Shown: piece after piece, positions 4,385 through 32,000 of the stretch
How the letters are laid out: every line of letters starts with the position of its first letter
How positions within the stretch are numbered: the stretch's first letter is position 1
From: Amoeboradix gromovi X-113
Lineage: Eukaryota; Fungi; Sanchytriomycota
Direction: 5' to 3'
NCBI GenBank assembly: GCA_018985225.1
Contig: JADGIF010000029.1
Coordinates: 973-32,972 of the forward strand
DNA: 32,000 nucleotides
Program-made: the position numbers and the translations under genes
The notes under the pieces: generated by a model
Database searches by the model: none
Told to the model about the DNA's origin: nothing
What the model saw: the letters and a program-made list of their open reading frames with translations, nothing else

Positions 4385-4673
4385 TTACATTTCAATTTTG
4401 ACATGATTTCATTATTTGAGACAAAAGTATGAAATGGCTTTATTTTTTGAATGTATTTATCAATCATTAGAGCTGGTAGACTTAAATGGTTGTGATATGT
4501 AAAATTAAGGATATAAGGGCTAAGCGGTAAGTTTTACTAAACCCACTAAAACTACTTGTGCAGTGACTAACGGCTTGAAAATTGATTTTGATGGCCTAAT
4601 TTATTACAGAGTTCGCTCTACTAGCATAAAAGAGAGAGGGTTTACCTATCCAAATACCATATTTTTAACATTT

Positions 4674-5183
4674 GGGACACCAAATATAAAAACTAGACTA
4701 ACTCGTTTTTAAAGGAGGTGCTCCATACTGAGGAAATCATTAATAAAAGATCTTCTATTATACCAATTTTCTTTCATTGATTGTATTCCCCTCTTCAAAA
4801 TAAAACTAGAAAACCCTGCATCTCGTTCATATATATGAGGTCTTTGAGCATCTAAGCAAAAGGTGTATTTTCTTAGACGGTACTCTTTCTTCATTTCATT
4901 TAGTGTTATACTAACATCATTACTCTTATCTATTCTAATTTTTACAGGGTAATAGTGATATTTTATTTGAAGTAAAGATTGGATGAAAGAGTAAGAGAAT
5001 AGCTGTACAGAATATTTATTTTTGAAATTTCGATACAAAAAGTTATTTATTTTTCTTTCATACTCGTCAACTCCGCAACTAGCTGAATGTCCACTCGCCT
5101 CTTGAATCCATAAAATTAATAAAGCTGAAATAATGTTCCAATTTGTTACAGAAAGTTAGTCCAGTTTTTATATTTGATGTCCC
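4674..5183. mobile_element. 510-bp non-autonomous TIR element (Sola1-type ends)
   Basis: 30-bp TIRs: gggacaccaaatataaaaactagactaact (4674-4703) and the reverse complement of 5154-5183, with 2 mismatches. Flanks are ATTT and ATAT (AWWT). The same TIR bounds the element at 19130-22866. Confidence 0.85.
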
Positions 5184-5382
5184 ATATGTAAGTAGAAAAC
5201 AATAAATTATCGCTCTAGGAGCTCCACGTTTTCTAGCTGTGGTGATTTGCAGAAGCATGTCACAGATGAAAAAAAGAATGTTAAAAGTCTGTGCAATCCA
5301 AACATTCTAGAAAGAAGGAAAACTGAGAAATAGAATTCATGAAATTGCGATTAAGAATTTATTCAACTGGAATCGGTGACTA

Positions 5383-8639: not shown

Positions 8640-8670
8640 GGAGTTATATATCTTGAGGCTTGAAACTAGA

Positions 8671-8785
8671 CCTCATTAAAAGACACGATTTCCGAGAAGA
8701 TTGAGAATTTTCAGAGAAACTAATTACTCCATTAAAGTGACCACTCACGCTTTCACTACCCTCAGGCGGGATTGAATAAGGATAC
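8671..8785 (-). ncRNA. Putative omegaRNA scaffold (copy A)
   Basis: Conserved 3' block downstream of the RuvC-III motif, containing hairpin AGUGA-aa-GC-GUGA-GU-gg-UCACU and ending in GAGG. The 5' boundary is approximate. Confidence 0.55.
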
Positions 8786-9108
8786 GTATATTTGGTGTTA
8801 AATTCCTTGCTGCATATGATCACTATCCACACAAGTTTCACAGAGTCGATGAGTGCGTGCTGTCTATTAGTTATTTCTTTAGATCTTACATATTCAGGAC
8901 CGCGAGACTAGAACAACTTATCATTGATGAATGGTGAGGATATCGCGTTTATCCCATTGGAATTGTCTAGAAAAGAAGAGTATTATTATACAAGAAGAAA
9001 TGTATTCTCGAATAAGACGATCTCTTTTAAAGAAGATGTGGATAGAAAAAGTGACTTCTAAATGTATTGTAAAATTTATGGGAATCTATTTTTTGGTGTT
9101 CAGTGACC
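8671..9108 (-). mobile_element. IS607/Fanzor2-like element, internally deleted copy A
   Basis: The minus strand encodes a decayed TnpA HTH (EYVRSKEITNR..HSSTL*N) joined to a Fanzor tail (DSDHM-AARN..TKYTYPY). It aligns with copies B and C. GG is present at both inferred junctions. The left boundary is less certain than the right. Confidence 0.8.
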
Positions 9109-9372
9109 TGGACAGAGTCTAATGGAAGAGTGTATTTTGAGTCTATTAGCGATTTCTTTAAATTTGACATCTGAGGTCATCGTAGAAATATTTCCGCTAA
9201 GCGTTGCTGCACTTAATATAGTTCTCAGGCACAAAAGACAAATCATATATGATTTAAAAAAGGAAAGTCATTTATTTAATTTCATTTTAATAAATCGATT
9301 ATCGTAATGAACGTATCGATTTGTTTTACCCATGATCCTTTAATAATTTTCAAAACAAAACTCTCATTTCAC

Positions 9373-11205
9373 ATGGCGTCCGAATCAAATTCTAAACAAA
9401 TGGCTAGTTTAACCTGGCATGATGTAGAATATTCAGTCAAAACCAAGAAGGTTGAAAAGCAACTACTTAAGAAAATTAGTGGTGAATGTTTACCTGGTCA
9501 ACTAGTTGCCATTCTAGGCTCAAGTGGTGCTGGTAAATCCACGCTATTGAACGTTCTTAGTGGTAGGGCAACTGGAAATATATCTAGCTCTTCCCAAGTA
9601 CTAGTGAATGGCCAACCTCGGGACCCTGCAGACTGGCTTAAAATGACTTCTTTTGTTGAGCAAGATGATTTATTTTTCGAGAACATTACTTGCAACGAGT
9701 CCATTCAATTTAGTGCCGATCTTAAACTACCCCACTTAACATCTAAGCAGCGAAAACAGGTTGTAGAAGATACAATTAATGAGTTAGGACTCGTAAATGT
9801 AAAAAATTCCCCCATTGGAAATGCCAGTACACGTGGTATAAGTGGAGGCGAGCGAAAACGAGTGGCAATTGCTGTTGAATTAGTTACTGACCCTGCGATT
9901 ATATTTCTTGATGAACCCACTAGTGGCCTGGATTCATTTATTGCTTTAAATATCATAAAAACCTTGAAAGAAATGGCTGTATCTAAGAATAAGACCATCA
10001 TAATGACCATTCACCAACCTCGTGAAACCATTATTCAGTTGTTTGACAATATTATGCTTCTTAGTCAAGGGAAGATGGTTTTTTTTGGCAATTTAGAGCA
10101 AGGCATTAAACACTTCTCTGATCTCGGTTTTCCGTGCCCCGATAACACAAATCCTGCAAATTTCTTTTTGGATTGTATAACAGAAGACTACAGGTCTCCG
10201 GAGCTGCAAGAGTCATCAAAGTTGCGAATTACGAAACTGCAAGATAACTGGTACTCCGACACAAAGCTGCAAAATCCTAAATTAGAATCCTCTGATTACA
10301 ACAAGTCATTTAAAATGACTTTAATGAAATTTAATGCTTCATGGCCATATGAAATGATTCTGCTGCTACAACGCGATTATAAGAACATATTTAGAAATGC
10401 TTCGACATTCGGTGCCACTATTGGAGGTGGGTTGGTTTCTTTGCTAATATTTAGCATTATCTACCATGACACGTCTGACAGTCCTGCGGGTATTCAGAAC
10501 AGACAAGGGTTGATATTTAATGTATGTATTAATGCGATGTTTGGTAGTTTAAATGTTATTAATTATTTTCCTGCTGAAAAACCTATAATTCGAAAGGAGA
10601 GATCTGCTGGGATGTACAGAGCACCCAGTGCATATTTATCAAAGGTTTTCGCTTATTTTCCGTTGATAGTACTGCAGGTCGTAGTGCTAAGTGTCCCGCT
10701 GTACTGGATAGTGGGACTACGGAACGATGTTGTTATATTTCTGATTTATGTGCTGGTTATATTTATAACAACGATAACAGCTACATTCATGGGATTTATG
10801 TAATTAAACGATTAACGTAGGATAGGTGCATGGGCGCCCAATGTCACTGTAGGTCAGATTTTTGGACCAATGATTGCCATCTTGTTCATGGTATTTGGTG
10901 GATTATTTGCAAATCTGGACTCTATAACACCTGTGATAAGATGGATACAGTACATATCACTAGTAGCAAATGCAAATAAAGCGCTAAACCAGAATGAATT
11001 TGATGGGACAGAGTACAGCTGTGCGAAAGAAGTCCAGGGCAAGTGTGTATCATTGACTGGAGAAGACATAGTCAAGAATTCAAGTTTAAACACACCTGGG
11101 TTATGGATAGTTACATTGGTCAACATTGGAATGATTTGTGTATTTTGCGTAATTGGAATGATTGGATTTTACAAGACAACACGACCACAAATCAAGCTGA
11201 AGTAG
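9373..11205 (+). CDS. ABCG (White-like) half transporter; exons 9373-10799 and 10821-11205
   Basis: Walker A GSSGAGKST, signature ISGGERKRV, FLDEPTSGLDS and TIHQP. Removing the 21-nt GT-AG intron at 10800-10820 joins the two ORFs in frame (GFM-IGAWAPNV). Confidence 0.94.
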
Positions 11206-11474
11206 CTACAATAAACACAACATTGACTTAAACAATCCCCAATCTTCTTAGGATCAAGTCAATGCAGCCATGACACTCAATAATTTATTCCAAATCGACT
11301 CTCTTAGCAGTTTCTATCTAGGTACATATTGATTAATCCAAATAGAAATGAAATTTAAATCAGTTTTATTAACCCGTCACCTTAATGTTCTCTTAACATG
11401 TAACGTCTAAACTGAACTAAATGAGTAAAATGTACGTTATATGTTTTGTCTTTAACATGCCTCTGATCGGTACT

Positions 11475-11600
11475 CCTCAATAAAAGTCCTAATTAACGAG
11501 AAAATCGAGAATTTCCACAGAGAAACTAACAATGCTAGATGCTCCGTTGCAGTGCCTGCTCACGCTCTCACTACTCATAGGCGGGATTGAATAAGGATGC
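11475..11600 (-). ncRNA. Putative omegaRNA scaffold (copy B)
   Basis: Same conserved block, with hairpin AGUG-aga-GC-GUGA-GC-agg-CACU, ending in GAGG. Confidence 0.55.
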
Positions 11601-11815
11601 ATATACTTGATGTATATGTTCCTTGCAGCCATATGGTCTCTATCTATCTTCAAATGACAGTTAGTTGGTACAGGTTCAGGTTTCTAAGTTGGTTTCTTTA
11701 GAGTACCATACCTCGTACATGTCTGACTAGTAAATGATTCATTTCATTCGACCATCGTCTTTCCTCTTTGTTTACACTTGAACTTCAAGCATTCCTTGAA
11801 TAAATTATGCAGATA
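11490..11815 (-). pseudogene. Fanzor2/TnpB C-terminal remnant (zinc finger plus RuvC-III)
   Basis: ESFTSQTCxx(C>Y)G ... C..IDRDxxAARNI motif order, with in-frame stop codons. Confidence 0.88.
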
Positions 11816-12191
11816 TCACTGTCTAGGCATTGAAAGACATCTAATTCTTCCATGTTTGGATCAGTTCCTCAGTGTTGATGAATGTACACTACAACTATTA
11901 GTTATTTCTTTAGATTCCATTTACCATCTGCGAAGATAAAGAATATCGAGTGTTTAAGCTGTTGGAAAAATCTGGAAAAGTCATGAAATTATATAGAAAT
12001 GCATACAAATTCGCGATAAATGATTTATTCAAGAAAACAGTCGACCTGACCCCAAATTTTCTTAATTTTCTAAAAATAGTAATCAATTACTGCTCTATTT
12101 CCCATTTTATTATATTTAATTGAGGATGAGTAGTGGACAGTATCTCGGATCTGTCACAAATATATGATACTGTATAATCAAACAATACGAT

Positions 12192-14650: not shown

Positions 14651-16276
14651 TTGGTTCAGCCAATCAAAAAAAAATATTTTTATAGGACAAAGCATGAGAT
14701 AACTGTTAGCTATGACGGAATTGAATCGTCTCTATCTTTTGATGAAGGAAAAATGGCTGGACATTTACGTACAAAGCTAGCAGAACTTACTAAAGAAAAA
14801 CTAGAATTAATTGAAATTTATTATGGCGGAATTAAGATGATTGGAGGAGAATTATTGGTAGCAAATGCTATTTATGAATATAGATATTCAACAGATCAAA
14901 AAGAGTCCTTTAAAACTACGACTAAACAAGCGAAAGATATTTTAAGTCGTTCAAAACAAAAAGAAATTCCTGAGTTGATTAAGACATTTTCTTCGCAATC
15001 TGTCGACATAAATGATGAAGCATTGACCAGTGCATCCGATGAGCTTCAAATGCAATCTGCCATCATTGATTTTCTTAAAAACCTTTGCGAAGAGAAATGT
15101 TTGCTATCATTTCACGATACTTCTGCAAAACCAATTATTGGATCAAATCGAAAGCCTGATGTCACTTGTGTGTCTAAATCGATTACTGGGCATCCTTCTT
15201 TGAGTATGGTTGTTACAGTGATTGAATTAAAATTTGAATGGGATAAATCTTCGAGTAAGAAGTATAAAGAAGCAGTTCAGCAGGCATATACATTTGCAGA
15301 GGAAGTTTTCAAATGTCAACCAAGTCGTAGCATGTTTTATGCCATTGTAACAGATATTAAGGAGACACAAATATGGAAATACTTTAATGGTAAGTCAAAA
15401 TTAGAATGCCAATGTAGCCAACTTCTTGATTGGACAAGCGCTAAACCAGTAATTAAACACTTACTAACACAATCACTAATGGAATTGGGTTTTACTAAAT
15501 GTTTGACCTCTTCCATAGGTAACATTTCAGATATTGAGAGTATCAAGGCCAAATATTCTAACAGTAGTGCTCGGGTATTCCGATGTAGATATAAAGACTC
15601 TGAACAAATTGTTCTTAAATGCCGTTTTAGTTCAATGTTGATTGACTATGAGCGAAAAGTGATGAATGAGCTTATTCATGATAACATTGCTAAATCCTCG
15701 GAAGTATTTAAAGGCATCATTGATTTTGTACATTATCACTATATTCAAATTCGTCCATGTGGTCAAGTATTTGATAGAGAACATAAAGCTATAGCAAATG
15801 ATGTTTACACAAAACTGAAAGGAGCACTTGAATTTGCTCATAAGAGTGGATATTGCCACAGAGATGTTAAACCAATGAATATCGTTATTCATACTGATAA
15901 CACACCTATATTGATTGACTGGGAACTGGCAGTCGAGTCTGATACAGATGTTGAATTTGAACTATCATTTACGTGGGCATTTGCATCAGACGAGTATTTG
16001 AAACTTATATTTCAAACTGAAAAAGCCAATTTTAAAAAAGAATATGATTTTGATTCTTTATTGTATTCAATAATATATGTTAAAATAGATCTCTGGCCAA
16101 CAATTCGATTGGAAAGTATTGAATCCGTGAAGAATTTTATTCAAAAACGACAGAAAATAGTGGACAACATATTAAATCGAGAACCAGAATTTCGAGAATT
16201 AGTCAATCCTCGAATCAATAACGACTTGGATATTGTGCCAAAAATGGATGGATTGAAAATCTTGGACACCAAATAA
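14651..16276 (+). CDS. Crinkler-type effector: ubiquitin-like header, PD-(D/E)xK nuclease and protein kinase (start uncertain)
   Basis: Beta-grasp-like N-terminus, RKPDVT...VIELK...QQAYTFA nuclease motifs, and kinase motifs IVLK, HRDVKPMN, IDWELA and YDFDSLLYS. Confidence 0.8.
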   Translation: MVQPIKKKYFYRTKHEITVSYDGIESSLSFDEGKMAGHLRTKLAELTKEKLELIEIYYGGIKMIGGELLVANAIYEYRYSTDQKESFKTTTKQAKDILSRSKQKEIPELIKTFSSQSVDINDEALTSASDELQMQSAIIDFLKNLCEEKCLLSFHDTSAKPIIGSNRKPDVTCVSKSITGHPSLSMVVTVIELKFEWDKSSSKKYKEAVQQAYTFAEEVFKCQPSRSMFYAIVTDIKETQIWKYFNGKSKLECQCSQLLDWTSAKPVIKHLLTQSLMELGFTKCLTSSIGNISDIESIKAKYSNSSARVFRCRYKDSEQIVLKCRFSSMLIDYERKVMNELIHDNIAKSSEVFKGIIDFVHYHYIQIRPCGQVFDREHKAIANDVYTKLKGALEFAHKSGYCHRDVKPMNIVIHTDNTPILIDWELAVESDTDVEFELSFTWAFASDEYLKLIFQTEKANFKKEYDFDSLLYSIIYVKIDLWPTIRLESIESVKNFIQKRQKIVDNILNREPEFRELVNPRINNDLDIVPKMDGLKILDTK

Positions 16277-16938: not shown

Positions 16939-18999
16939 ATGACTTCCAACGCTACTTCACCTCGAAATAGAGATTCTACAAGAGAATCTACAAGAGATCC
17001 CAGTGAGAATCCAAACATGACGCACCATCTACTATCAACTCAAAATCCATTTAATACACAGGAAAGCTATTTCGTATCTCCTAACGTAGAAACGTTTGAT
17101 GATATGACATCGTCTAGTAATCATTCAGAATCTGATGAGGAACAAATAGACATTGTGGAAAATTGGGTAAATGAATCTACTCACCTTGAATGTTGTCAGA
17201 AGAGATGTTTACGAGGGAAAGATAATGAACTAACACACTTTAGAATCAACTATTTAAGTTGGACAAGTGAACAAAGAAAATCATGCACGAAAACAATTGT
17301 CTACTGCTCTAGAAGAAAGAATCAAAGTAATCCAACTACTGGACGTGAAGTCCTTCAATACACTTTCTATCCTTTTCAGGAGGTATGTGTTAATGCCATT
17401 ACAAGATTATTTAGTATTAATCATAAGACAGTGAAGAGATGGCTACATAACTTTAAACATGATGGCCTACAATTGAAATCACATGGTAATACACGTAGAG
17501 AACCTTCTCATGCATTGTCAAGTATATTGAAGGAAGATATAGCTGAGTGGCTTACAGCCTTTGCAAATCGAGAAGGTGAACAACGACCAGGTCAGTGGAG
17601 AAATAATGGTCAATTGGTAAGAGATACAAGTACCTACACAGTCATTCCATCTCACTATATGATTCAAGCAATCTACAACCTGTATCTTTCAGATAATCAA
17701 GTTAGTGTAAGCTACTCAACCTTTAAACGACTCTTTGACCTACAGCCTGTTAAAATCCAAACACCCAAGTCTGATATCTGTGATGAATGTACACAACTCA
17801 AATTGAAAATCACTCAATGTGTAGATGAAATGACATTGACAGAGTTAAATCAAGTACTCTCAACTCATTTGAAAGAAGCAAGATACACTAGAGAAGAGTA
17901 TCATGTAGACTCAAGACAAGAAGAAGTTACACACCTTTCATTTGATTATGCTCAGAATCTATGGTTACCTCATCTTGCTAATCAACCTGCTTCCTTTTAC
18001 TTCATGTCATTGTTAAATGTATGTGTTTTTGGAATATTAGATGAAAAAAAGAATGTTCAGATGAATTATATTTACAATGAAGGTCAAGGTAAGAAAGGAA
18101 GTAACAATGTCATGTCAATGTTAATTCATTATTATTATAAATTAAGACCTGAGAAACGAAGACAAATTGTTTGTCACTGTGACAACTGTACAGGTCAGAA
18201 TAAAAATAATTGTACCGTCAAGATGTTATGTTGGCTAGTTCTTCAAGGACATTCAGAGGATATTCAATTGAAGTTTATGGTACGTGGACATACAAAGTTT
18301 GGTCCTGATTCTCATTTTGGTGTGATCAAGAAAGCTTTTCAATTAAGAGATTGTTATACCCTTGATCATGTTTGTAATACAATCAATGACTCCTCAGAGG
18401 AAATGAATCAATGTTATATTTTTCCAAGTAGAAAGTTTAAAGATTATAGAAGTTCTTTGGATCGTATCTTCAATGACGTGAAGAGCATTACAAGTTATCA
18501 ATGTTTCTGGTTCAACAAGGATTGGAAAGGAAAAGTCAAGGTAAGAAAATCTGTGAATGATGAATTTGAGATGATTGATTTACTTAAGATATCATTAGCC
18601 TCTTACACTTTTTATCCTCAACAGCTGGAAGTTCCTGGACTTAAGATGATTAAGAAGGAAGGATTGTATACAAAAGTACGTCCATTTATTCCTGAAGCAT
18701 TTAAAGATATTTTATGTCCTAGACCTACTGTTGTTCAAAATGAAGATGAAGTTGAGTTAGAAGTAACTGAAAGAGTGGAAGATGAAAGCAATACTGTTGT
18801 AGATGTAGGTGTAGATCCAAATGTAAATCTTAAGAAACGTAGAATAACTAATGCGGATGAAATTCGAAAGCTGACAAGTGTGTTCAGTATAAATCCAAAT
18901 CCAGATAAACAAGTATTGGAAACTCTAGCAGTTGATCTTGGATGGGACATTCAACGTGTTAGTTTTTGGTTTGGAAACAAGAGAAAGAGAACAAAATGA
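16939..18999 (+). CDS. Intact Sola1-type DDD transposase with C-terminal homeodomain
   Basis: Motifs CCxxxC, HGN, DICDEC, SFDYAQN, CDNCTGQNKNN and GHTKFGPDSHFG. The C-terminus KKRRIT...LTSVFSINPNP...LAVDLGWDIQRVSFWFGNKRKR is a homeodomain. Confidence 0.88.
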   Translation: MTSNATSPRNRDSTRESTRDPSENPNMTHHLLSTQNPFNTQESYFVSPNVETFDDMTSSSNHSESDEEQIDIVENWVNESTHLECCQKRCLRGKDNELTHFRINYLSWTSEQRKSCTKTIVYCSRRKNQSNPTTGREVLQYTFYPFQEVCVNAITRLFSINHKTVKRWLHNFKHDGLQLKSHGNTRREPSHALSSILKEDIAEWLTAFANREGEQRPGQWRNNGQLVRDTSTYTVIPSHYMIQAIYNLYLSDNQVSVSYSTFKRLFDLQPVKIQTPKSDICDECTQLKLKITQCVDEMTLTELNQVLSTHLKEARYTREEYHVDSRQEEVTHLSFDYAQNLWLPHLANQPASFYFMSLLNVCVFGILDEKKNVQMNYIYNEGQGKKGSNNVMSMLIHYYYKLRPEKRRQIVCHCDNCTGQNKNNCTVKMLCWLVLQGHSEDIQLKFMVRGHTKFGPDSHFGVIKKAFQLRDCYTLDHVCNTINDSSEEMNQCYIFPSRKFKDYRSSLDRIFNDVKSITSYQCFWFNKDWKGKVKVRKSVNDEFEMIDLLKISLASYTFYPQQLEVPGLKMIKKEGLYTKVRPFIPEAFKDILCPRPTVVQNEDEVELEVTERVEDESNTVVDVGVDPNVNLKKRRITNADEIRKLTSVFSINPNPDKQVLETLAVDLGWDIQRVSFWFGNKRKRTK

Positions 19000-21241: not shown

Positions 21242-22320
21242 TCATTCACCATAAATAGCATGAAATTCCTCAGGGATATATCTGAGTGCACGACCAATGT
21301 CTCGTTTCTTCCTCTCAGACAATGCCGTTGGAATTAATGATTCAGGTGTAAATAAATAGTCATTTTGACTCAAGTCCTCTTCAATAATAGTATCAAATTC
21401 CACAAACATCGGATCGTTGACTTGTTTCTTACAAAAAACAACACCTGGGTGTTCAGCCTTGAATAAAAAGACGTGATATTTTGCAATGCTTGAAACATCA
21501 TTGAATACAAGATCTAATTTAGATCGATAATCTTTGAATATATGACTTGGAAATATCTTGCATTCATTGGTGACTGAAGACGATTCTATAATTGATTTCA
21601 CTTGATCCAAATGAAATACATTTTCTCTTGCATATTTCTTTTTAATGTGACCAAATCCACTATCAGGACTAAATTTAGTATGTCCTTTTATCATAAATTT
21701 AAATTCAATCGTATTGCATTTTCCAAGTAAACACATCCATGACATCAATTTAATAATGGTGTTGTTTTTATTTTGACCAACACAATTATCTGCATGCAAT
21801 ATCAAGTTCACTCGTTGTTCTTTTGGGAGGCAATAGGCATAATCTAGTAGTAACGTGGCCACATTATTATTTGCCTTTCTGCCTTGGTCTTCTCTGTAAA
21901 TGTGATTCACTTGTTTGTGATGGGTTTCATTGCGTATTCCAAATAAATTAACGTTTAATAAAGAAAGAAAGTACAAGTCACTTGGTTGATCGTGTAATTG
22001 TGGTCAACTTAAATTTTGGCTGTAATCAAATGACAAGTGTGTAAATCCTTGTCTACTGTGATCGCGGTTGTAATCGAGTCTTGCTAATTTGGCTTGTCGT
22101 AAATGTAATTGAAAGGCCGTGGTCAATTCCAAAGTAGCACTTTCTGATAAATCTATTGTATTAAGTTGTTCGCGAAAGACAGTTCAAGTGTCGCAGACAT
22201 CCGTTTTTCCTGATTTTATTTTAATATTGCCACATAATTTAAAATACTTGCGAAATGTTTCTATATTGATATTCAATGTAGTGGTGTCACAGATGTACAT
22301 ACCATGTCGACAATTCATCA
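21242..22320 (-). pseudogene. Sola1-type transposase pseudogene (5'-truncated, two in-frame TGA stops)
   Basis: KTDVCDT*T, HLSFDYSQNLS*PQL, ADNCVGQNKNN and GHTKFSPDSGFG; paralogous to 16939-18999. Confidence 0.9.
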
Positions 22321-23708
22321 AACATTGATGTTAATGGTCTGTTGAATATATCTTGTGATATTAGAGGTGATAATAATGATGAAAAACGACAACATTTATA
22401 TGAATGGTTCAATAGAAATTTTCCACCAGCAATTATCAATGGATTAAGGGTCATGTTACTTGTAAATTTTAATTATGCTCGATTTGGGAGGTTGATCCTT
22501 GGATTTATTTCATCACATGCTAATGCTGGAAATCACCGATATATTAGTACAACATTTAGACTATACGGTTAGTCTAATATTCATACTTGAATAAATATTA
22601 TAAATAAAATCATTGGTTCATTTATTTAGTCTATTTTTCATATTCGAATCAAGATTTAAAAGTCATTTCATTGGTCAAATGTATTTAGTCTAGTTATTAC
22701 ATTTGATTAACACGATTATCTTTAAAGTGACGTAACTAAGTGAATAATGGCTACATTGACTCGAAATTATGATTTTTGAAAAGATCATGTTCTAGAGATT
22801 CTGAAAAGTCTATTGTTTAAATTTCTTATAATTTCGAGTCAGTCTAGTTTTTATATTTGGTGTCCCATATAGTCTTGGTAAACTTTCAAACTTTGTATAA
22901 TTGTGCAGTTTCAATTGCGGCATATTTTCAGACCCCTCGCAGCATGACTTTGCATAAAAAAGCAGAATTATCAGATAGAATTTAATTTGGTAATTCTTTA
23001 GAATAAGTACTAGTTTCAGCTTCTATAGTAAAGTCTTCAAACTGCTAAAAAGTCATCTAGTTTCAGTATTCCTGACGCAATTTAACACTGATAGTAAGCT
23101 TGAAACAAATCTTTTGATGTTTTTGAGAGTCGATGTCAGTGCAAGAAAATATTTACGAGGTACATAGGTCTTGGTAGATGATGTTCTGCATGTGTTTTTA
23201 CACTTAAGATGACAGCTCTCAATTGCACTTGAATAAACTAATTATTATGATTGCACGAAATAAAATGCTCCAACATGGTCTCTTTCCAGAGTTTCCCGCT
23301 AGGAAAAACGATACTCAATTTTTTATCGATTGCAAAAGGCTCCAAACCGATAACTCAATTATGTCATTTCTAAAGAAATCATTAATTCAGGCAAAACATA
23401 CTCTTCCACACTAAAAACTCGTACAAAGGTACAGCTTTCATGACGATTCAAAGAAATAATAAGATTAAGAGAGAAATGAGCCACGGGCTTTGTAATCATG
23501 ATAGTTTCGCTACTGTTGCTATCACGGCGATTATATCAAATAAGCGCGTTTCCATTAACACTATGGAGCTCGCATAAAATAATTTTTCCGGTCATGTTTG
23601 GTGCCATTTCGGCATACCTGGGTTTAATTCAACAGTATTATCTGGGCTCATTGAGTAAATTCATCTGGCACCTTGTGTGTCAGGCAAACGAAAAATTAAA
23701 TTTGAAAC

Positions 23709-31755: not shown

Positions 31756-31821
31756 ACTGATCGCTTTGAATTCTAATAAATTTATTTTTCAATTTTGGGG
31801 TTTTGAGAATCATTTAAGGCT

Positions 31822-31945
31822 CCTCTTTAAACGTCCTGATTTCCGAGAAAATCGAGAATTTCCACAGGGAAACCAATGCTAGCTTCTCCGTTACAGTGAT
31901 CGCTCACGCTTTCACTACCCTGAGGCGGGATTGATTAAGGATGCA
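31822..31945 (-). ncRNA. Putative omegaRNA scaffold (copy C)
   Basis: Hairpins CCC-gccuca-GGG, AGUGA-aa-GC-GUGA-GC-ga-UCACU and UUUCC-cugu-GGAAA. Similarity to copies A and B ends sharply near GAGG. Confidence 0.6.
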
Positions 31946-32000
31946 GATACTTGATGTATATGTTCCTTGCTGCCATATGATCTCTATCTATCTTCAAATC
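31822..32000 (-). mobile_element. IS607/Fanzor2-like element copy C, right end (continues past the window edge)
   Basis: The minus strand from 32000 reads DLKIDRDHMAARNIYIKYLHP*, followed by the conserved 3' block ending in GAGG at 31822. Confidence 0.88.

Follow-up and report, generated by a model that had tools for sequence, protein, structure and literature searches.

The locus lies on contig C556 of the 10.55-Mb assembly of Amoeboradix gromovi, within a stretch of 32 kb that was analysed as a whole (the window); genome-wide counts were made on the same assembly. A. gromovi is a sanchytrid fungus that parasitizes the alga Tribonema and has a genome of 10.5 Mb with 36.3% GC (PMC8371127). 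On the minus strand, positions 11473-12048 hold a non-autonomous mini-element of ~575 bp. It is a whole copy of an IS607/Fanzor2 mini-element family, here termed family A (subfamily A1), and agrees with the family majority at 91% across all 573 nt; the end positions of the family have been set from 36-60 copies. The parts follow each other in the order left end, TnpA helix-turn-helix (HTH) stub, Fanzor2 tail with RuvC-II, zinc finger and RuvC-III, and structured right end. The single-frame minus-strand translation of 11480-11932 crosses five stops. In this translation the HTH stub reads SKEITNSCSVHSSTLRN*SKHGRIRC, and HNLFKECLKFKCK, ESFTSQTC and LKIDRDHMAARNI lie downstream of it in the same frame. 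The window copy has no working protein and is dead.

The left end (11985-12048, minus strand, as are all parts of this copy) begins with CAG, in which the AG at 12047-12046 is the probable core dinucleotide, and its 22-nt motif has 562 hits in the genome compared to 2 for the reversed control. The broken 5' stub of an IS607 tnpA gene at 11801-11927 encodes a MerR-like winged HTH without the catalytic domain. This piece matches an intact IS607 TnpA (9/17 identical, E 4e-5) and shares 75% DNA identity with a longer copy, L066, which runs on into the YARVSS serine motif. Since both L066 and L067 carry the same family A left end followed by TnpA through the catalytic serine motif, the HTH stub of the window copy is tied to IS607. 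The broken 3' part of Fanzor2 at 11486-11800 matches an intact Fanzor2 at 49% (E 7e-11), and its sister copies score above the PF07282 cut-off. It contains the codon of the alternative RuvC-II Glu (11740-11738), a C4 zinc finger and the RuvC-III DRD (11644-11636), and is fused to the tnpA stub by a deletion at 11801/11800. The right end and candidate omegaRNA scaffold occupy 11473-11622, as judged from a predicted fold, pair counts and a 21-nt motif with 610 genome hits (0 for the reversed control). Stem-loop 1 is predicted at 11585-11574, its predicted pseudoknot partner GAGG lies at 11478-11475, and the copy closes with AG at 11474-11473. By the architecture of TnpB and Fanzor2, the host flank at 11455-11472, which varies among copies, would take the guide position.

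Because the HTH and tail matches are accompanied by a family of hundreds of copies, the likeness to TnpA and Fanzor2 is not due to chance, and the origins that a sequence-only reading had proposed for the two pieces are confirmed. That reading had also described a TnpA+Fanzor2 element, and here only the ancestry stands. The copies in the window are deleted mini-elements and not TnpA+Fanzor genes, since the TnpA catalytic domain and the RuvC-I, REC and WED regions have all been lost.

Two homologous copies that had been noted near 8671-9108 and 31822-32000 are real. The first is an older composite relic (8669 to ~9170, minus strand; 79% to the family majority) made of two stacked tnpA 5' stubs and a right end, and the other is the right end of a third copy (31820-32000, minus strand; 93%) cut by the contig end. 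A fourth, diverged copy is represented at 23212-23430 on the plus strand by a remnant of its left end and of the start of the HTH, which matches L066 in blocks of 77% and 70%. Elsewhere, the copies at L010, L043, L044 and L046 are nested within or adjoin older family A copies. Other features of the window include an ABCG transporter gene with a 21-nt GT-AG intron (10801-10821), removal of which restores the frame, and an ORF at 14651-16276 (plus strand) with Pfam hits to DUF6826 and fungal kinase domains. Two ORFs encode DUF7869 (Sola-like) transposases, one at 16939-18999 (plus strand), which is intact and has a C-terminal homeodomain fused to it, and one at 21242-21976 (minus strand). An abundant family of elements with terminal inverted repeats (TIRs) of 36 nt is found at 4668-5189 and also at 16253, 19120, 22870 and 26552; its TIR is also present, unchanged, in L085 from an unrelated assembly.

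The proliferation first suggested by three copies extends far beyond them, to about 560-610 copies genome-wide. The PF07282 profile finds 560 candidates in the genome, with 150 of the 150 scored lying above the cut-off, and ~575-bp copies at this count make up about 3% of the genome. In the contigs of a public read set, the depth over the element is, roughly, several hundred times the single-copy depth. Family A copies occur on hundreds of contigs, with differences of 6-20%. Identity to the window copy is 82-89% in its 40 best DNA matches, and the closest pair among 44 sampled copies, a sample biased toward best hits, reaches 94%. Two deletion subfamilies have been distinguished, A1 (the window type) and A2, which retains more of RuvC-II. 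Most copies have stops or frameshifts. RIP or CpG decay of the copies was rejected, as the changes show no context bias.

The ends of family A are precise to the base, with purine-CAG at the left junction and GAGG-AG closing the right end; 38 of 40 copies have this purine (p 7e-10). The flanks of the copies are unique. Target site duplications (TSDs) of 1-8 nt, sought in 23 clean copies, occur at counts equal to those in shuffles, and a search for TIRs at the family A ends found none, the ends not being complementary. Motifs of the TTTYY type repeat in both ends without a clear phased direct-repeat array. The right end closes with the same two bases that follow the first C of the left end, namely AG in family A and CG in a second family, B. 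The same rule is seen in viral relatives (AG in L149/L166, one of which ends in AT) and in a metagenome relative of family B (CG). The GG core of characterised IS607 elements is absent, the junctions being R-CAG and R-CCG. Most IS607 members end in GG (PMC13565253), so the AG and CG junctions are a variant feature, and a 2026 review describes IS607 insertion as GG-specific. From their junctions, families A and B appear to use the non-GG cores AG and CG, and the predicted target-adjacent motifs (TAMs) would be CAG and CCG, respectively. Measured Fanzor2 TAMs include CCG and TAG (PMC10432273).

Family B is a second IS607/Fanzor2 lineage (loci L072-L082) with R-CCG at its left and GGCG at its right junction. 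It has 117 right ends, 69 of them exact; many of these are close to the edge of a contig, and younger copies may thus have been collapsed. Near-identical relatives of family B occur at four different metagenome sites (L247-L250).

Both the TnpA profile NF033518 and PF07282 score above cut-off in the genome, in keeping with the element type that the sequence-only reading had named. NF033518 does so at 9 places, and among the longer copies it reaches 160 bits against a cut-off of 110. A look for full-length TnpA+Fanzor copies had been proposed as well; longer copies do exist, including family A fragments among the matches on C385, C477, C565 and C1, but a search of the whole assembly for an intact family A TnpA or parent found fragments only. 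On C459, TnpA is intact and belongs to family B, and the Fanzor has one stop. A single, divergent element on C542 (L071, 1476-3495, minus strand) has an open Fanzor2 frame of 671 aa, overlapped by a TnpA frame that a single stop interrupts in the HTH region. Its right end is unlike that of family A.

The C542 Fanzor2 has DPG, a Glu placed six residues ahead of the zinc finger, and the RuvC-III Asp, which together form the fingerprint of Fanzors (PMC10711439); P0001 and P0125 match the published DPG/Glu pattern. The mini-elements retain the alternative Glu and RuvC-III and have lost DPG. Subfamily A2 has LPS where C542 has LPE, and a nuclease-dead parent was considered for this reason; it has been ruled out because the catalytic Glu six residues before the zinc finger is kept. 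The C542 protein also has an HTH_OrfB_IS605 domain (PF12323 hit), and its best solved relative by sequence is the mimivirus Fanzor2 (9B0L). A Foldseek search with a pLDDT-90 model likewise places 9B0L best, with a TM of 0.63 compared to 0.40 for SpuFz1. In VIA-align, the mimivirus Fanzor2 is tied with TnpBs at Z 22-24 against the C542 model, and SpuFz1 reaches 12. On its sequence and modelled fold, the C542 protein is nearer to Fanzor2 and the pro-Fanzors than to Fanzor1. A FastTree tree, in which the family A mini row fills 24% of the columns, unites family A, C542, P0125, P0127, P0066 and P0263 in a clade with support 100 that does not include the cyanobacterial pro-Fanzors, with family B as a separate lineage; having no Fanzor1 rows, it says nothing on the Fanzor1/Fanzor2 split.

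In every long element, the Fanzor frame spans all of tnpA and the Fanzor ATG lies 7 nt after the tnpA ATG. Full overlap in the +1 frame has been observed in L071, L072, L084 and the cyanobacterial L171-L222, where 4-13 nt separate the start codons. The lack of stops in the +1 frame goes beyond that in synonymous shuffles (P 0.02 to <0.001), compared to 22-38 stops in non-overlapping IS607s. Its presence in cyanobacterial and viral elements makes the overlap ancestral, and an origin as a eukaryotic invention has been ruled out by the cyanobacterial cases. Leaky scanning would yield both TnpA and Fanzor from such an arrangement. No description of the full tnpA/Fanzor overlap was found in the literature searched.

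Among the copies used for mosaic analysis (L001-L049), linkage does not extend beyond about 30 nt, and of 34 sites, 29 are variable in A1 as well as in A2. Since linkage is lost over distances contained within one read, the assembly alone is an unlikely cause, and gene conversion in patches, involving both the copies and diverged coding parents, is the likeliest one. Substitutions private to single copies are near neutral (pN/pS 0.74, 15 stops, equal density in all regions). Polymorphisms shared among copies in the coding remnant have a pN/pS of 0.24, with 19 of 25 at third codon positions (p 2e-5).

Among intact relatives, the one closest to family A is L084, which has CAG...GGAG ends; its neighbours are DUF5832 and a divergent gene for PCNA, as is typical of giant viruses. 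In the same assembly (GCA_013565735.1), L085 carries the exact TIR of the A. gromovi Sola-like element. Both loci are on giant-virus-like contigs within a very fragmented eukaryote assembly, which thus has two transposon families in common with A. gromovi. These sequences suggest a viral shuttle, in one direction or the other, and the nearest intact relative suggests a giant-virus source for family A. Single-protein scans of viral and metagenome contigs gave no hits.

Taken together, the locus is probably a non-autonomous, internally deleted IS607 transposon of the Fanzor2 (IS607EU) clade that has been spread by TnpA acting in trans. In the proposed scheme, the parent encoded the serine recombinase TnpA together with Fanzor2 as an RNA-guided nuclease, and longer copies in the same genome do join the family A left end to the TnpA catalytic domain. 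Internal deletion left only the two ends, as seen in the window copy. TnpA from autonomous copies would bind these ends in trans and, by analogy with bacterial IS607, recombine the two matching AG dinucleotides so that the element is excised as a circle. The bacterial enzyme recombines over a 2-bp core via a circle and leaves a scarless donor site (PMC6188088). The circle would then be inserted at purine-C-AG sites without target duplication. The right end, if transcribed with its host flank, may serve as an omegaRNA and direct Fanzor2, acting in trans, to the site left empty, for which a CAG TAM is predicted; the target motif of bacterial IS607 equals the TnpB TAM (10.1101/2023.11.20.567912). 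Sister-chromatid repair would restore the copy, making each excision a net gain.

Several observations count against this transposition model. L010, the one nested insertion, lacks 2 nt of the family sequence if the core model is applied, no intact family A TnpA was found, and characterised IS607 cores are GG. Simple transposition does not predict the mosaic copies. No clean empty site has been found either: joined-flank BLAST gave one ambiguous case, and the sibling pattern search and metagenome flanks, the latter in mixed frames, were ambiguous as well. Likewise, no copy interrupting a recognisable coding frame was found, and no circle junction or empty allele was seen among the assembled contigs of one amplified DNA run. 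On the other side, hundreds of base-precise copies provide strong genomic evidence for IS607-type spread inside a eukaryotic nucleus. The burst of family A appears to be mostly past, as sampled copies are at most 94% identical, decay is near neutral and the assembly has no intact parent.

Other explanations for the copies have been weighed against spread by TnpA. The genome was obtained from whole-genome-amplified sporangia and was heavily contaminated with bacteria until it was cleaned (PMC8371127), and the contigs of the only public read set break inside the repeat, which would be in line with a contaminant, a chimera or an amplification artefact. However, ordinary fungal genes with tiny spliceosomal introns flank the copies, GC is at the genome average, and the copies differ and are dispersed as described above. 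One contig of depth 52 from the read set covers both the copy at 8669-9170 and the ABC-transporter gene. The unique DNA on either side of the copy at 11473-12048 has a depth of 41-52. The run probably derives from the source sample, so it serves as a check on the assembly and not as independent data. An artefact is hardly credible on these grounds, contamination is an unlikely origin for the element, and the nuclear location proposed earlier holds. It could also be argued that a eukaryotic transposase resident in the genome, whether Sola-like, of a Helitron or of another kind, took over an IS607/Fanzor2 relic and multiplied it, in the way seen for Fanzor2* in molluscs and Chloropicon. Such captures are already known (PMC10711439), DUF7869 transposases and their TIR elements abound in this genome, and no intact family A TnpA remains. 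The TIRs or TSDs that mark Fanzor2* are nevertheless absent around family A, its ends coincide with those of the intact IS607 relative L084, and family B shows the same end logic with CG, all of which makes capture improbable.

Spread via an RNA intermediate (SINE-like retroposition of an omegaRNA-bearing transcript) or by gene conversion would fit the structured 3' end and the strongly mosaic copies. Yet both ends are precise in most copies, the left end, which does not look transcribed, is as well conserved as the right end, and there is a fixed upstream purine without poly(A) tail or TSD. Gene conversion can shuffle existing copies but cannot create new sites with unique flanks, and we regard this route as very unlikely. 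Much the same weight is given to domestication of the copies, as a host library of guide RNAs or as a small fused HTH-zinc-finger protein. The low pN/pS of shared polymorphisms, the HTH and zinc finger in one frame, the intact Fanzor2 frame and the working ghost omegaRNAs of SpuFz1 (PMC10432273) speak for it. The near-neutral private substitutions, with stops and even density, the broken frames of most copies and the different right end of the intact C542 Fanzor2 speak against it, and the first of these also makes a functional fused mini-protein unlikely.

The last 150 nt of the family majority have a predicted fold z of -3.5, compared to -1.7 for the window copy. In 96% of cells, the loop CCTC is paired with the GAGG that immediately precedes the terminal AG, although the pair counts are inflated by the relatedness of the copies. 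The pair is changed on both sides in L084/L085, and two-sided changes come mostly from these two outside relatives. The modelled pseudoknot is a candidate match to the pattern described for IS607 TnpB and Fanzor2, and the right end is a candidate omegaRNA scaffold; an Rfam search of the right end gave no match. A broader and rather doubtful proposal is that Fanzor2 in trans once read, or still reads, the ~600 mini-elements as omegaRNA genes arrayed across the genome, that the burst and the fine-scale shuffling alike resulted from breaks linked to Fanzor and TnpA together with homologous repair, and that the frame overlap lets a scanning ribosome make both proteins from one mRNA. If true, dual translation would help to explain why only this IS lineage entered eukaryotes.

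Fanzor2 is found broadly in fungi (PMC10432273), and IS607-like sequences in eukaryotes, including fungi, have been reported (PMC3627910, PMC3673617, PMC10432273, PMC13565253). The fungal host alone is therefore not surprising (PMC10432273, PMC3673617). No paper on Fanzor or IS607 in sanchytrids was found in a search that left Repbase and most subscription journals outside, and the literature searched contained no report of this copy number, of non-GG ends or of mosaic copies. An earlier survey could not establish IS607 transposition in any eukaryote and ascribed multi-copy cases to segmental duplication (PMC3673617). Here, hundreds of copies with precise ends, unique flanks and a target motif are evidence of transposition for two families, which make up over 3% of the DNA of a 10.5-Mb fungal genome. 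The sequences point to a large, mostly past IS607/Fanzor2 burst in the nucleus, with non-GG ends. For assays, the genome also offers a natural Fanzor2 and a natural TnpA, one of each being intact, and the system could test whether Fanzor-driven restorative homing works in the nucleus.

The known systems most like this one are the IS607EU/Fanzor2 elements (ISvMimi/ApmFz2, Acanthamoeba, Ectocarpus). They have a serine-recombinase TnpA, a Fanzor2 with DPG and the alternative Glu, no TIR or TSD, and an omegaRNA-like right end with a pseudoknot (predicted in A. gromovi), and 9B0L is the best structural match. In contrast, they are reported at few copies per genome, compared to about 600 mini-copies and a second family in A. 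gromovi, which has AG/CG rather than GG junctions. Bacterial IS607 elements (IS607, IS1535, ISXfa1, CboIStron) and the cyanobacterial pro-Fanzors share a TnpA above the NF033518 cut-off, a matching end dinucleotide and a 4-nt upstream motif ending in that dinucleotide; in the pro-Fanzors the TnpB frame also overlaps all of tnpA. Unlike bacterial IS607, the A. gromovi elements have a probable core other than GG, a nuclear host and no group I intron, and the family A left end showed no clear phased direct-repeat array. The SpuFz1 'ghost' loci of Spizellomyces punctatus are similar in that many protein-less copies keep both ends and the omegaRNA region, with their own flank as guide. The ghost loci belong to Fanzor1, with inverted repeats and no linked transposase, whereas the A. 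gromovi copies are of the Fanzor2/IS607 type, have no TIRs and keep stubs of both tnpA and fanzor.
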